This document shows positions 7,649 through 11,146 of a stretch of DNA of 64,000 nucleotides, piece after piece. The first letter of the stretch is position 1. Each line of letters starts with the position of its first letter. The position numbers and the translations under genes are program-made. The notes under the pieces were generated by a model. The model did no database searches, was not told the DNA's origin, and saw only the letters and a program-made list of their open reading frames with translations. The stretch covers positions 186,001 through 250,000 of the IMG/VR virus record IMGVR_UViG_3300032675_000001; one strand, 5' to 3'.

Positions 7649-10600
7649 ATGCCATTGCATTCGTTTTTTGATTATGGAAAAGCAGCCCCAGGCAATCAAA
7701 CGTTTAATGCACCTGGAACATTTGTAGTCCCAGAAGGAGTCTATTCGGTAAATCTGTCAGGAACTGGAGGAGCAGGTAATCCGGGTAATGCGGGAAATCC
7801 GGGCACGGCAGGTAATCCTGGCAATCCGGGGAACAACGGAGTAGCAGGTCCGGGAGGAACCGCAGGCGCAGCAGGAAATGCAGGAACCAAAGGAAATGCA
7901 GGAAATCCAGGCAACAACGGATTAGCAGGCCCCGGTGGAACAGCAGGCACAGCAGGTAATCCGGGCACAAAAGGTAATGCAGGCAATCCGGGCAATAACG
8001 GAATTGCGGGACCGGGAGGAACCGCAGGCACAGCAGGCACAGCAGGCACAAAAGGAAATCCGGGTAATCCGGGAAATGTTGGCGTTGCCGGTCCCGGTGG
8101 AACAGCAGGCGCAGCAGGAAATGCAGGAACCAAAGGAAACGCAGGTAATCCCGGAAATAATGGGTTAGCTGGTCCCGGTGGAACGGCAGGCACAGCAGGG
8201 AATCCGGGTACAAAAGGCAATGCAGGTAATCCCGGAAACAACGGGCTAGCTGGTCCGGGAGGAACCGCAGGTACCGCAGGAAATGCTGGAACCAAAGGTA
8301 CCGCAGGCAATCCGGGGAACAACGGAGTAGCAGGTCCGGGAGGAACCGCAGGCAGCGCAGGAACAGCAGGGACCAAAGGCAGCGCAGGGAATCCGGGAAA
8401 CAACGGAGTAGCTGGTCCCGGTGGTACTGCAGGGGTAGGAGGAACAGGCGGCGGTGGAGGTGCAGCAGGACAAGCCTCTCCGTTTAGCGGAAATGGCGGA
8501 ACAGCAGGAAGTCCAGGAGCCACTGCAGGAGGCCCCGCACCTGCCACCGGGTCAACTGCCGGAGGAACTGGGGGAACAGGTGGCTCCCCCTATGGAGGCA
8601 CAGGAGGAGCAGGCGGAAAAGGTAACTCTACTGTCGTAGGAAGTGGTGGCGGCGGCGGCGGTGGCGGCGGCGCATATACAGCAGGCGGCGCAGCCCCATG
8701 TACATGGCCGGGTAAATGCGGAACAGCAGGTACAGTAGGAACTTCAGGCAGTGCTGGCACAGGCGCTGGTCCCGGAGGAGCGGCCCCATGTACTTGGCCG
8801 GGTAAGTGCGGAACAGCAGGTACAGTAGGAACTTCAGGCAGTGCTGGCACAGGCGCTGGTCCCGGAGGAGCGGCCCCATGTACATGGCCGGGTAAATGCG
8901 GAACAGCAGGCACCGCTGGTACATCAGGAAGTGCTGGCACAGGTGCTGGTCCCGGAGGTGCAGCCCCATGTACTTGGCCCGGTAAATGCGGAACAGCAGG
9001 TACAGCAGGTACATCAGGCAGTGCTGGTACAGGCGCAACAGCAGGGGGCGCAGCCCCATGTACCTGGCCCGGTAAGTGCGGAACAGCAGGAACTGCCGGT
9101 ACTTCTGGTAGTGCTGGCACAGGTGCTGGCCCCGGAGGAGCGGCCCCATGTACTTGGCCCGGTAAGTGCGGTGTTGCTGGCACCGCTGGTACATCAGGAA
9201 GTGCTGGCACAGGCGCAACAGCAGGGGGCGCAGCCCCATGTACATGGCCGGGTAAATGCGGAACAGCAGGCACAGTAGGAACTTCAGGCAGTGCTGGTAC
9301 AGGCGCAACAGCAGGTGGCGCAGCCCCATGTACTTGGCCCGGCAAATGCGGAACAGCAGGCACAGCAGGAACTGGTGCCACCAACGGTAATCCCGGTACA
9401 GCAGGAAATACAGGAAACTCATCAACTTTTGGTACATTGCAAACATTCCCCGGAGGCACAGGAGGCAGAGGAGGATCAGCGGGTACTGGAAATAACGGTA
9501 TAGCAGGATCAGCAGGAAATGCAGGTACAAAAGGAACAGCAGGCAATCCCGGAAACAACGGAGTCGCAGGACCGGGCGGAACAGCAGGATCAGCGGGAAA
9601 TGCAGGGACAAAAGGCAATGCAGGTAACCCCGGAAATAACGGAGTCGCAGGACCGGGCGGAACAGCAGGATCAGCGGGTACAGCAGGGACCAAAGGAAAT
9701 CCAGGAAATCCGGGGAACGTTGGTGTTGCAGGACCGGGCGGCACCGCAGGTACAGCGGGTACAGCAGGGACCAAAGGAAATCCGGGCAATCCCGGAAACA
9801 ACGGAGTCGCAGGACCGGGCGGAACAGCAGGATCAGCGGGAAATGCAGGCACAAAAGGAAACGCAGGTAACCCCGGAAATAACGGAGTCGCAGGACCGGG
9901 AGGAACCGCAGGCACGGCAGGCAATCCCGGAACAAAAGGAAACGCAGGTAATCCCGGAAACAACGGACTAGCTGGTCCCGGTGGTACAGCAGGCACAGCA
10001 GGTAATCCGGGCACAAAAGGTAATGCAGGTAACCCCGGAAATAACGGGCTAGCTGGTCCGGGAGGAACCGCAGGTACCGCAGGAAATGCTGGAACCAAAG
10101 GTACCGCAGGCAATCCCGGTGGCGCTGGCGGCGGCGGTGGCGGCGGAGGAGGACACGGACAAGGAGGAATGTGTTCAACATCAGGTTGTAGCGGTGTCAA
10201 AGGAAATGCAGGAACTGCACCAAGTGTAACCAATGGTACCGGTGGTTCCGCTGGAGTAGGCGGCACGGCAGCGACCCTTGGTACAGCCGGTGGATCAGGT
10301 AACGCTGGAACCCCAGGGACAGCAGGTACTTCTGGCAGTGCTGGTACTGGCGCAACAGCAGGGGGCGCAGCCCCATGCACTTGGCCCGGTAAATGCGGAA
10401 CAGCAGGTACAGCAGGTACTTCTGGTAGTGCTGGTACAGGTGCAACAGCAGGGGGCGCAGCCCCATGTACTTGGCCCGGTAAATGCGGAACAGCAGGTAC
10501 AGCAGGTACATCAGGCAGTGCTGGCACAGGCGCAACAGCAGGTGGCGCGGCCCCATGTACTTGGCCCGGTAAGTGCGGAACAGCAGGTATAGCAGGTACT

Positions 10601-11146
10601 TCTGGTAGTGCTGGTACAGGCGCAACAGCAGGTGGCGCGGCCCCATGTACTTGGCCCGGTAAGTGCGGAACAGCAGGTATAGCAGGTACTTCTGGTAGTG
10701 CTGGTACAGGTGCAACAGCAGGGGGCGCAGCCCCATGTACTTGGTCCGGTAAATGCGGAACAGCAGGTACAGCAGGTACTTCTGGTAGTGCTGGTACAGG
10801 TGCTGGTCCCGGCGGCGCAGCCCCATGTACTTGGCCCGGTAAATGCGGAACAGCAGGTACAGCAGGTACTTCTGGTAGTGCTGGTACAGGTGCTGGTCCC
10901 GGCGGCGCAGCCCCATGTACTTGGCCCGGTAAATGCGGAACAGCAGGCACCGCCGGTACTTCTGGTAGTGCTGGCACTGGCGCAACGGCGGGAACAGCCG
11001 GTACTTACAACTCAGGAACAGCAGGTAATTCAGGAAGCACTGCATCCCCTACAAACGCATCTTCAGTAAAGGTATATCCATATCAGATCATTACAGTAAC
11101 AGTAGGCACAGGAAGTGCAAATGGTGCTGTCACTGTCACTTGGTGA
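7649..11146 (+). CDS. Glycine-rich collagen-like/polyglycine repeat protein, probable fibre-tip adhesin
   Basis: Gly-X-Y 27-aa repeats and 30-aa GGAAPCTWPGKC repeats; FNAPGTFVVP N-terminus and GAVTVTW C-terminus typical of phage Gly-rich domains. Confidence 0.75.
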   Translation: MPLHSFFDYGKAAPGNQTFNAPGTFVVPEGVYSVNLSGTGGAGNPGNAGNPGTAGNPGNPGNNGVAGPGGTAGAAGNAGTKGNAGNPGNNGLAGPGGTAGTAGNPGTKGNAGNPGNNGIAGPGGTAGTAGTAGTKGNPGNPGNVGVAGPGGTAGAAGNAGTKGNAGNPGNNGLAGPGGTAGTAGNPGTKGNAGNPGNNGLAGPGGTAGTAGNAGTKGTAGNPGNNGVAGPGGTAGSAGTAGTKGSAGNPGNNGVAGPGGTAGVGGTGGGGGAAGQASPFSGNGGTAGSPGATAGGPAPATGSTAGGTGGTGGSPYGGTGGAGGKGNSTVVGSGGGGGGGGGAYTAGGAAPCTWPGKCGTAGTVGTSGSAGTGAGPGGAAPCTWPGKCGTAGTVGTSGSAGTGAGPGGAAPCTWPGKCGTAGTAGTSGSAGTGAGPGGAAPCTWPGKCGTAGTAGTSGSAGTGATAGGAAPCTWPGKCGTAGTAGTSGSAGTGAGPGGAAPCTWPGKCGVAGTAGTSGSAGTGATAGGAAPCTWPGKCGTAGTVGTSGSAGTGATAGGAAPCTWPGKCGTAGTAGTGATNGNPGTAGNTGNSSTFGTLQTFPGGTGGRGGSAGTGNNGIAGSAGNAGTKGTAGNPGNNGVAGPGGTAGSAGNAGTKGNAGNPGNNGVAGPGGTAGSAGTAGTKGNPGNPGNVGVAGPGGTAGTAGTAGTKGNPGNPGNNGVAGPGGTAGSAGNAGTKGNAGNPGNNGVAGPGGTAGTAGNPGTKGNAGNPGNNGLAGPGGTAGTAGNPGTKGNAGNPGNNGLAGPGGTAGTAGNAGTKGTAGNPGGAGGGGGGGGGHGQGGMCSTSGCSGVKGNAGTAPSVTNGTGGSAGVGGTAATLGTAGGSGNAGTPGTAGTSGSAGTGATAGGAAPCTWPGKCGTAGTAGTSGSAGTGATAGGAAPCTWPGKCGTAGTAGTSGSAGTGATAGGAAPCTWPGKCGTAGIAGTSGSAGTGATAGGAAPCTWPGKCGTAGIAGTSGSAGTGATAGGAAPCTWSGKCGTAGTAGTSGSAGTGAGPGGAAPCTWPGKCGTAGTAGTSGSAGTGAGPGGAAPCTWPGKCGTAGTAGTSGSAGTGATAGTAGTYNSGTAGNSGSTASPTNASSVKVYPYQIITVTVGTGSANGAVTVTW
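7820..10985 (+). repeat. Coding tandem repeats in the order 81-bp x8, 90-bp x8, 81-bp x7, 90-bp x7 (boundaries approximate)
   Basis: GPGG codons at 7847 to 8414 and 9569 to 10055 (period 81); CCCCATG(T/C)AC at about 8694 to 9324 and 10371 to 10911 (period 90). Confidence 0.9.

Follow-up and report, generated by a model that had tools for sequence, protein, structure and literature searches.

A glycine-rich gene in a freshwater virus raises the question of why one protein should carry four collagen-like repeat arrays of almost the same length, and what shape such a chain could adopt. The gene, at positions 7649-11146, was studied within a 64,000-nucleotide stretch of DNA (the window, bases 186001-250000 of IMG/VR record IMGVR_UViG_3300032675_000001), and the record is a virus genome with direct terminal repeats that is rated complete. 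The genome is that of a jumbo phage, as indicated by its 360,683 bp, its 35 tRNA genes, a ribonucleotide reductase and a nicotinamide phosphoribosyltransferase, and the sequencing runs containing the region are lake-water and freshwater metagenomes. An earlier reading made from the letters alone (the sequence-only reading) had taken matched repeat counts to imply a fold-back, length-tunable rod. The model favoured here, to which a probability of roughly 0.58 is given, proposes that the repeat protein is a jumbo-phage fibre or adhesin whose arms fold back on a small sandwich base. Open reading frames (ORFs) were read under table 11, recoding was not assumed, and all ORFs used are open.

Anatomy of the repeat gene

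The gene stands out by its GC content (0.61 in the 8001-10000 bin against about 0.42 window-wide), and its plan is almost perfectly two-fold, running N-piece, A1, linker Y, B1, M, A2, linker X, B2, C-piece:

7649..11146, + strand: whole gene, an ORF of 1165 amino acids (aa), 36% Gly
7649..7762, + strand: N-piece, aa 1-38, predicted beta strands, QTFNAPGTFVVPEGVYSVNLSG; matches the start of Gly_rich_2 and is kept in all family members
7763..8443, + strand: arm A1, aa 39-265, unbroken Gly-X-Y repeating every 27 aa
8444..8683, + strand: linker Y, aa 266-345, GGX-rich, with SPYGGTGG inside and a terminal run of 9 Gly
8684..9403, + strand: arm B1, aa 346-585, 8 units of 30 aa
9404..9478, + strand: M element, aa 586-610, a hydrophobic island between the halves, containing SSTFGTLQTFPGG
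9479..10126, + strand: arm A2, aa 611-826, 27-aa period, one partial and 7 full units
10127..10270, + strand: linker X, aa 827-874, a 9-Gly run followed by HGQGGMCSTSGCSG
10271..10990, + strand: arm B2, aa 875-1114, one Trp-less unit and 7 Trp-node units, 30 aa each
10991..11146, + strand: C-piece with stop codon, aa 1115-1165, SSVKVYPYQIITVTVGTGSANGAVTVTW; matches the Gly_rich_2 strands 'nI.VTPGETLTVvVg.gg'

The repeat A unit consists of nine perfect Gly-X-Y triplets (10 of 27 residues Gly), so that each A arm holds about 75 such triplets in succession, A1 consisting of 7 full units preceded by a degenerate one and followed by a truncated one. Both this perfection of repeat A and the presence of poly-Gly at the two A-to-B turns, as described in the sequence-only reading, were confirmed in the sequence, the 9-Gly runs lying at aa 333-341 and aa 827-835, one in each A-to-B linker; GGX runs are limited to linkers X and Y. 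Each A unit also carries an X-Pro-Gly and an X-Lys-Gly site (GNPG, GTKG). The B unit is composed of six Gly-X-Y triplets and a node, GTGAT/GP-GGAAPCTWPG, with 9-10 Gly in 30 residues, and in all lineages Ala, Ala and Thr replace the in-phase Gly at 3 of the 10 positions per unit (…GTG ATA GGA APC TWP…). Long uninterrupted (Gly-X-Y)n, as in collagen, is therefore a property of the A arms, and Gly at every third residue throughout is lacking in the B arms. The non-repeat ends amount to only 38 aa (N) and about 30 aa (C). Overlapping ORFs of up to 795 aa, rich in Pro, Ala and Val, are found on the minus strand and in other frames across 7704-11045; they were rejected as genes and are by-products of a GC-rich triplet repeat.

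The claimed copy numbers of 8, 8, 7 and 7 are borne out by exact anchors, although the figures shift with the counting rule. The anchor AGPGGTAG occurs eight times (aa 66-255) and then seven times (aa 640-802) with a 27-aa period, and CTWPGKC occurs eight times in B1 (aa 351-561) and CTW.GKC seven times in B2 (aa 910-1090) with a 30-aa period, one CTW.GKC copy reading CTWSGKC. Tandem Repeats Finder returns 7.5, 7.6, 7.6 and 7.6 copies, and a consensus caller (at least 45% identity to the consensus unit, degenerate end units included) returns 9/8/8/8; B2 is the most homogeneous array (92% matches). The formula 8-8-7-7 is better stated as four near-equal arms.

Relatives and co-variation of the arms

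Family members were recovered solely by codon-pattern scans of independent assemblies, and seven lineages entered the arm comparison. The order N-piece, A, linker, B, M, A, linker, B, C-piece is common to all long relatives. In aa, their arms measure (A1 / linker+B1 / A2 / linker+B2):

L104: 71 / 129 / 70 / 132; no Trp nodes
L064: 101 / 160; first half only
L145: 120 / 194 / 116 / 192; three units or nodes per array, a complete orthologue
Window: 228 / 325 / 226 / 311
L028: 238 / 325 / 240 / 332; 8-8-8-8 by anchors
L040: 238 / 300 / 240 / 326
L041: 289 / 365 / 279 / 371

Across these seven lineages all four arms scale together over a span of about 70 to about 290 aa, and a regression on 14 half-genes gives back = 1.12 x out + 55 (r = 0.994, residual standard deviation 10 aa), out being the A arm and back the linker with its B arm. 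The check proposed in the sequence-only reading, namely co-variation of A and B in homologues, is thus positive. The unit periods also co-vary, with A/B values of 27/30 aa for three lineages against 33/36 aa for L041. Within each genome the units are homogenised across both halves, and between genomes there is no one-to-one unit orthology; since sizes are nevertheless retained, the arrays turn over yet keep their size. Segmental duplication was rejected as a sufficient cause of the matched counts, being unable to couple A with B; duplication together with gene conversion can give A1 = A2 and B1 = B2 but not A tracking B, and a geometric constraint is therefore favoured. The linkers stand in the order X then Y in L028, L040 and L041 and in the order Y then X in the window, in L145 and in a closely related fragment (G001), the N-, M- and C-side boundaries remaining position-specific despite the swap, which argues for recombination between halves that kept the arm lengths. 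The Y-type linker is recognisable in L028, L025, L040 and L145.

The M element, strand-like and hydrophobic, is kept in every two-module relative, and an M-like SS..F[CG].TFPGG motif is present in 9 of 41 short family members. The conserved form of the node is G-T-G-A-T-x-G-G-A-A-P-x-[TN]-W-x-G, in which Trp-x-Gly is kept. A regular display of CTWPGKC disulfide loops, which the sequence-only reading had envisaged, did not survive this comparison: the cysteines are replaced in L028, where units read STWPGQS, NTWPGQS and ATWPGKC at this position, and are absent in L040, L041 and L104, so that the idea was rejected on account of lineage-specific node cysteines. As a separate observation, the frame of L064 (IMGVR_UViG_3300037783_000004) contains at aa ~300-475 a Trp-rich, non-glycine globular insert of about 170 aa, placed just after M and ahead of the second A array, where the two-hairpin arrangement set out below expects the base.

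End pieces and the Gly_rich_2 family

In a Pfam search the whole protein matches only Collagen (PF01391; E 4e-25, 87.8 bits against a cut-off of 27.2), its PHROGs matches are collagen-like tail fibres, and the Scl2 and Lcl collagen-like adhesin models match below the NCBIfam cut-offs. Queries of a protein word index with either the complete protein or its B region returned generic collagens only, and an exhaustive HMMER search gave 14,155 collagen-like matches (E <= 0.001), none of the seven inspected being a family member. Among GenBank phages, megablast with the upstream fibre gene and tblastn with the whole protein and the C-piece were without match, and the N-piece gave just weak tblastn matches (E 0.6), one of which led to an Erwinia jumbo-phage protein and so to Pfam Gly_rich_2 (PF21722). 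Paralogues of either end piece are absent from the phage genome.

The codon-pattern scan for T-F-N-A-[PS]-G-T-F uncovered a large set of phage proteins of 300-500 aa in which the same two end pieces (C-piece ...VTPG..YPVTV...GQV.ISWNPQ) flank a glycine-rich middle that varies, and an ESM Atlas look-up of one short member gave Gly_rich_2 clusters, taken as a lead only. Compared by hhalign with a Gly_rich_2 alignment built from 12 relatives of the Erwinia protein, the N-piece matches columns 11-45 (probability 89%, E 2e-6) and the C-piece columns 71-89 (E 0.006). Joined by script, the two pieces are collinear over columns 12-90 with a score of 49.1 against 38.2 for the N-piece alone (probability 94.8%), and the 11 score units added by the C-piece bring the joined score to a level that none of 100 C-piece shuffles equalled. 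A profile of 47 end-piece sequences matches the same alignment with a probability of 96.3% and E 1.6e-9, within columns 11-91 of 254. The collinear profile-profile similarity thus covers the beta-strand core, and the full ten-strand TNF-like sandwich with multiple GGX motifs is not present, only columns ~11-91 of 254 being represented. Judged by these profile comparisons, the repeat protein is related to Gly_rich_2 and is not a curated member. It is a giant, extreme variant of the TNF-like, glycine-rich phage fibre class, and as a variant it is new.

A model of the fold

An AlphaFold2 (AF2) model of the Gly_rich_2 alignment has a confident beta core (predicted template-modelling score 0.69), and its structural matches are the Pam3 fibre (7ypx/7yfw) and the Bxb1 tail tip (9d93), at E 4e-5 to 2e-4, with the ALK/LTK TG domains as weaker matches. 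In cyanophage Pam3 the fibre protein gp24 is a trimer in which TNF-like strands run on into six glycine-rich loops; each loop contains two glycine-rich motifs, which are elongated and parallel to the fibre axis, and putative receptor-binding residues lie at the distal loop ends (PMC9608196). These loops appear to be out-and-back hairpins, a reading that is made here and not in that paper. Polyproline II (PPII) bundles have been reported in the Pam3 and Bxb1 structures (PMC13243192). By analogy, a Gly_rich_2-type fold would be one in which a glycine-rich loop exits a beta-sandwich and comes back, and the position of the first loop would in the window protein hold about 1,090 residues.

Taken together, these observations suggest that the chain encoded by 7649-11146 is probably folded back. 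One small beta-sandwich base would be made up of the N-piece, M and the C-piece, and two of its glycine-rich loops would have been drawn out by tandem repeats into a pair of long hairpins. In hairpin 1, A1 would run outward and B1 return, and in hairpin 2, A2 would run outward and B2 return, with M coming back to the base between the two. The linkers Y (hairpin 1) and X (hairpin 2), non-repetitive and GGX-rich, would then be the far tips, the place where the relatives have their putative receptor-binding residues. A return of M to the base, and hence two hairpins, fits the conserved, hydrophobic and strand-like character of M and the occurrence of its motif in short members; alternatively, the chain may form a single hairpin with its tip at M. 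Because each loop would exit and re-enter one base, the out and back arms would have to stay equal, and arms anchored in this way would grow and shrink together in evolution, all four at once. The expected rod would measure about 65-70 nm (228 aa x 0.29-0.31 nm per residue) as against about 300 nm for a linear chain.

How the arms pack is a further matter, on which composition bears directly. A content of one-third Gly is associated with triple-helix packing, and GGX with about two-thirds Gly with polyglycine bundles (10.1101/2023.11.25.568672, PMC13243192); the arms have one-third Gly, and the earlier phrase "rather than a collagen trimer" finds no support in a composition that fits collagen-type packing. 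A trimer of hairpins with a parallel triple helix per arm would suit both this composition and, by analogy, the trimeric state of the Pam3 fibre. A single-chain arrangement as in gp38 would also fit by analogy, the sole pointer to it being the gp37-gp38-like position behind a fibre gene. In S16/T2-type phages the gp38 gene directly follows the distal tail-fibre gene. The most specific version of the model, offered tentatively and with odds clearly below even, is that a single chain arranges its four collagen-like arms antiparallel in a PPII-type rod of some tens of nm, with a minimal TNF-like sandwich at the root and two receptor-binding tips. Collagen itself is parallel and three-chained. If true, a single-chain four-arm rod would be a protein architecture not yet seen, its length set by repeat number.

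Weighing the model

A number of observations weigh against a fold-back of the arms. The model is supported by none of the structure predictions that were run: a single-sequence AF2 run of the full-length protein gave a predicted local distance difference test score (pLDDT) of 26, a low value that from such a run is uninformative, and a complex prediction of the N-piece (aa 1-50) with the C-piece (aa 1125-1165) reached 0.26 against a mark of 0.34, which speaks neither for nor against. The Pfam Gly_rich_2 model matches neither the whole protein, nor the end pieces (E <= 10), nor any frame in a six-frame scan of the genome, a miss that would follow from an interruption of the domain by 1,090 aa; even the short relative L124 scores only 15 bits, and the C-piece match is weak when taken alone. 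Known antiparallel PPII bundles are built of GGX motifs in helices of 4-11 residues (tabulated in PMC13243192), and the roughly two-thirds Gly typical of such bundles is not found in the arms. As regards the regression, the seven lineages amount to no more than about five size classes, and two halves taken from a single gene do not count as independent points.

The pairing itself also has exceptions. G001, a 90-kb fragment that is 99.7% identical to the window over 16.6 kb (46 substitutions), lacks exactly 270 nt (three B2 units) in its repeat gene, giving 8-8-7-4 and a residual of -88 aa from the regression. At k >= 41 the junction yields k-mers that the window allele lacks, so that the short B2 is probably based on real reads, although it may alternatively reflect the collapse of an array in an allele that is more homogenised. 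Just 4 Trp nodes in B2 are also present in L054, which belongs to another lineage and whose contig ends inside A2, and L049 and L025 have one-unit differences between arms. In view of G001 and L054, either the pairing is not obligatory or the short-B2 assemblies have collapsed. The A/B pairing is a strong tendency, not an absolute rule. The fold-back, length-tunable rod of the sequence-only reading accordingly gains from the co-variation of the arms and from ends that match one family, and its strict pairing is not supported.

Whether the matched counts might be a product of short-read assembly was considered, as Logan contigs from four lake-water runs break within every array and none spans any of them, several related contigs terminate within the gene, and G001 and the window differ only in B2 copy number. 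However, the longest exact internal repeat is just 112 nt, so that an assembly at k = 127 could resolve the arrays, and the A units show 15-30% nucleotide divergence from one another. At least seven independent assemblies, drawn from different samples and carrying units of diverged sequence, show the same plan and proportionality. Such an origin is extremely unlikely. A possible, if doubtful, alternative to the fold-back is a linear, parallel homotrimeric collagen-like tail fibre, in which the N- and C-pieces sit at opposite ends as small elements for trimerisation or attachment, X, M and Y interrupt the rod or act as hinges, and the equal quarters stem from an ancient A-linker-B duplication followed by concerted evolution. 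Such a fibre would account for the Pfam Collagen match, the Scl2 and Lcl matches (below cut-off as they are), the PHROG collagen-like tail-fibre families, the 14,155 collagen-like matches, the unbroken Gly-X-Y of the A arms with its one-third Gly and triple-helix composition, and unit lengths that are every one a multiple of three; 2-oxoglutarate-Fe(II) (2OG-Fe(II)) oxygenases are encoded nearby, and the short-B2 alleles (G001, L054) would be merely shorter fibres. It is harder to reconcile with A tracking B over a four-fold range and in unit period, as duplication and gene conversion cannot equalise A with B, with two ends that are collinear with adjacent strands of one domain family, and with the missing in-phase Gly at 3 of 10 triplets of the B units.

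Two further proposals were weighed. In a compact serpentine PPII sandwich each unit of 27-36 aa would be a strand with a turn, and the A and B arrays would be facing layers matched in strand number and length; this would explain the co-variation both of counts and of periods (27/30 against 33/36), and family relatives and snow-flea-type antifreeze proteins are indeed layered PPII bundles. However, interior strands of layered bundles need about two-thirds Gly (GGX) where the units have one-third, the tabulated PPII strands are 4-11 and not 20-30 residues long (PMC13243192), and the perfect Gly-X-Y of the A units is without a turn-like break, so that the sandwich is improbable. The chain might also be a glycine-rich tether or entropic spacer, flexible, for the most part unstructured and without defined packing, whose repeat number is subject to weak length selection only; this would agree with the pLDDT of 26 throughout and with the low-complexity composition. 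Given the poor information content of a low single-sequence pLDDT, the strict three-residue periodicity over 1,000 residues, the conservation of the 16-residue node motif and the M element across divergent lineages, and the tight arm proportionality, a tether is highly improbable. The fold-back of the arms on a common base thus remains the model preferred here.

Comparison with known systems

The closest known system is Pam3 gp24 (PDB 7YPX/7YFW), the top structural match of the model of Gly_rich_2, the family to which the ends of the window protein align; it likewise is a phage fibre with a beta-sandwich base, outward glycine-rich loops and putative receptor-binding residues at the distal side. 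It differs in its six short loops of GGGGxGG type, which form a compact lattice of four layers, and in possessing a complete ten-strand TNF-like domain as well as a coiled coil at the N-terminus, whereas the window protein would keep about six strands, carries two loops of about 550 aa built of Gly-X-Y repeats, and is missed by the Pfam model. The S16/T2-type gp38 adhesin (Salmonella phage S16, PDB 6F45) is also a glycine-rich PPII-sandwich adhesin, to which Pam3 gp24 has been reported to be similar (PMC9608196), but it has ten helices of 6-9 residues (PMC13243192) and hypervariable loops and is without tandem arrays and collagen-like triplets; a sequence match between it and the window protein was neither sought nor found. 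Collagen-like proteins (Scl2/SclB, Lcl, BclA and phage tail fibres; PF01391) share long (Gly-X-Y)n and a length tuned by copy number; they are, however, linear parallel trimers with a separate globular trimerisation domain, whereas the window protein has four co-varying equal arms, ends that belong to one family and a second repeat type with missing in-phase Gly. Natural antiparallel polyglycine-II/PPII bundles occur in the ALK/LTK TG domain and in the snow-flea antifreeze protein, but these are made of GGX or poly-Gly in 6-14 short helices, are not of phage origin and lack repeat-built rods.

Phage receptor-binding proteins determine host range, and the glycine-rich PPII adhesins (gp38, Pam3 gp24, Bxb1) are a recently recognised class. 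Within it, the present family would supply natural intermediates of increasing length: the arms of its two stretched loops range from about 70 to about 290 residues, with out and back in proportion throughout, and this arm proportionality may serve as a sequence-level signature of fold-back topology. The natural lengths (478, 698, 1165-1210 and 1399 aa) offer a series for the study of how long PPII or collagen-like strands associate, and possibly a design principle for length-tunable rods.

Gene neighbourhood

The repeat gene lies immediately 3' of a tail-fibre gene, and its surroundings are conserved in relatives:

791..5227, + strand: large fibre-like paralogue, 1478 aa; N-terminus and internal repeats common with 5304-7634
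5304..7634, + strand: upstream tail-fibre gene, 776 aa, C-terminal domain phrog_9017/7760; the same neighbour in L028, L145 and L041
11115..11750, + strand: S-adenosylmethionine-dependent methyltransferase, similar to PrmA and lysine methyltransferases; directly downstream in L028 too
12341..13057, + strand: phrog_7084 protein, weak DUF6065 match; downstream partner kept in L028, L145, L041 and L104
13057-13653, 13662-14300, 14937-15443 and 15445-16053, + strand: four 2OG-Fe(II) oxygenase genes, the first being phrog_61
phrog_7084 and phrog_61 neighbour loci: window 11115-16053; L145 120-1426; L041 11878-13685; L104 9242-9946

The order fibre, repeat gene, phrog_7084, phrog_61 is found in full in L145 and L041 and in part in L028 and L104. 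The phrog_61 oxygenase (13057-13653) resembles hydroxylases of the PKHD type and is a conserved neighbour of the repeat gene in L145 and L041. On the ground of conserved linkage, the 2OG-Fe(II) oxygenases and the methyltransferase may act as modifiers of the repeat protein, the phrog_61 enzyme being a candidate modifier of Pro, Lys or Asn; the repeat protein in turn offers a concrete candidate substrate for linked oxygenases that PHROGs annotates as auxiliary metabolic or host-takeover functions. A synteny search based on the methyltransferase returned one locus, which is unrelated. Next to the short family member L057, the adjoining oxygenase-like gene carries the PHROGs label 'ferrochelatase'.

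The paralogues 791-5227 and 5304-7634 begin with 288 nt that are 81% identical and have several internal repeat families with a GNANVGNIGA-type motif in common, and further copies of the N-terminal module of these upstream fibre genes are present in G001.

Other features of the window

The gene for the ribonucleotide reductase large subunit is split (17265-21031), 17265-18974 corresponding to positions 52-489 of phrog_84 and 19943-21031 to 489-795. Between the halves lies a 312-aa ORF (19008-19946), and an ORF with a NUMOD3 motif stands just upstream (16631-17329), so that the split looks like a homing-endonuclease or intron-type interruption. A nicotinamide phosphoribosyltransferase (phrog_448, E 6e-163), an auxiliary gene of nicotinamide adenine dinucleotide (NAD) salvage, is encoded at 37964-39436. 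Most of the 35 tRNA genes form an array at 44335-62265 (44.3-62.3 kb), and a separate tRNA predicted at 30380-30454, with anticodon CTA (called tRNA-Pyl by ARAGORN), would act as an amber suppressor.

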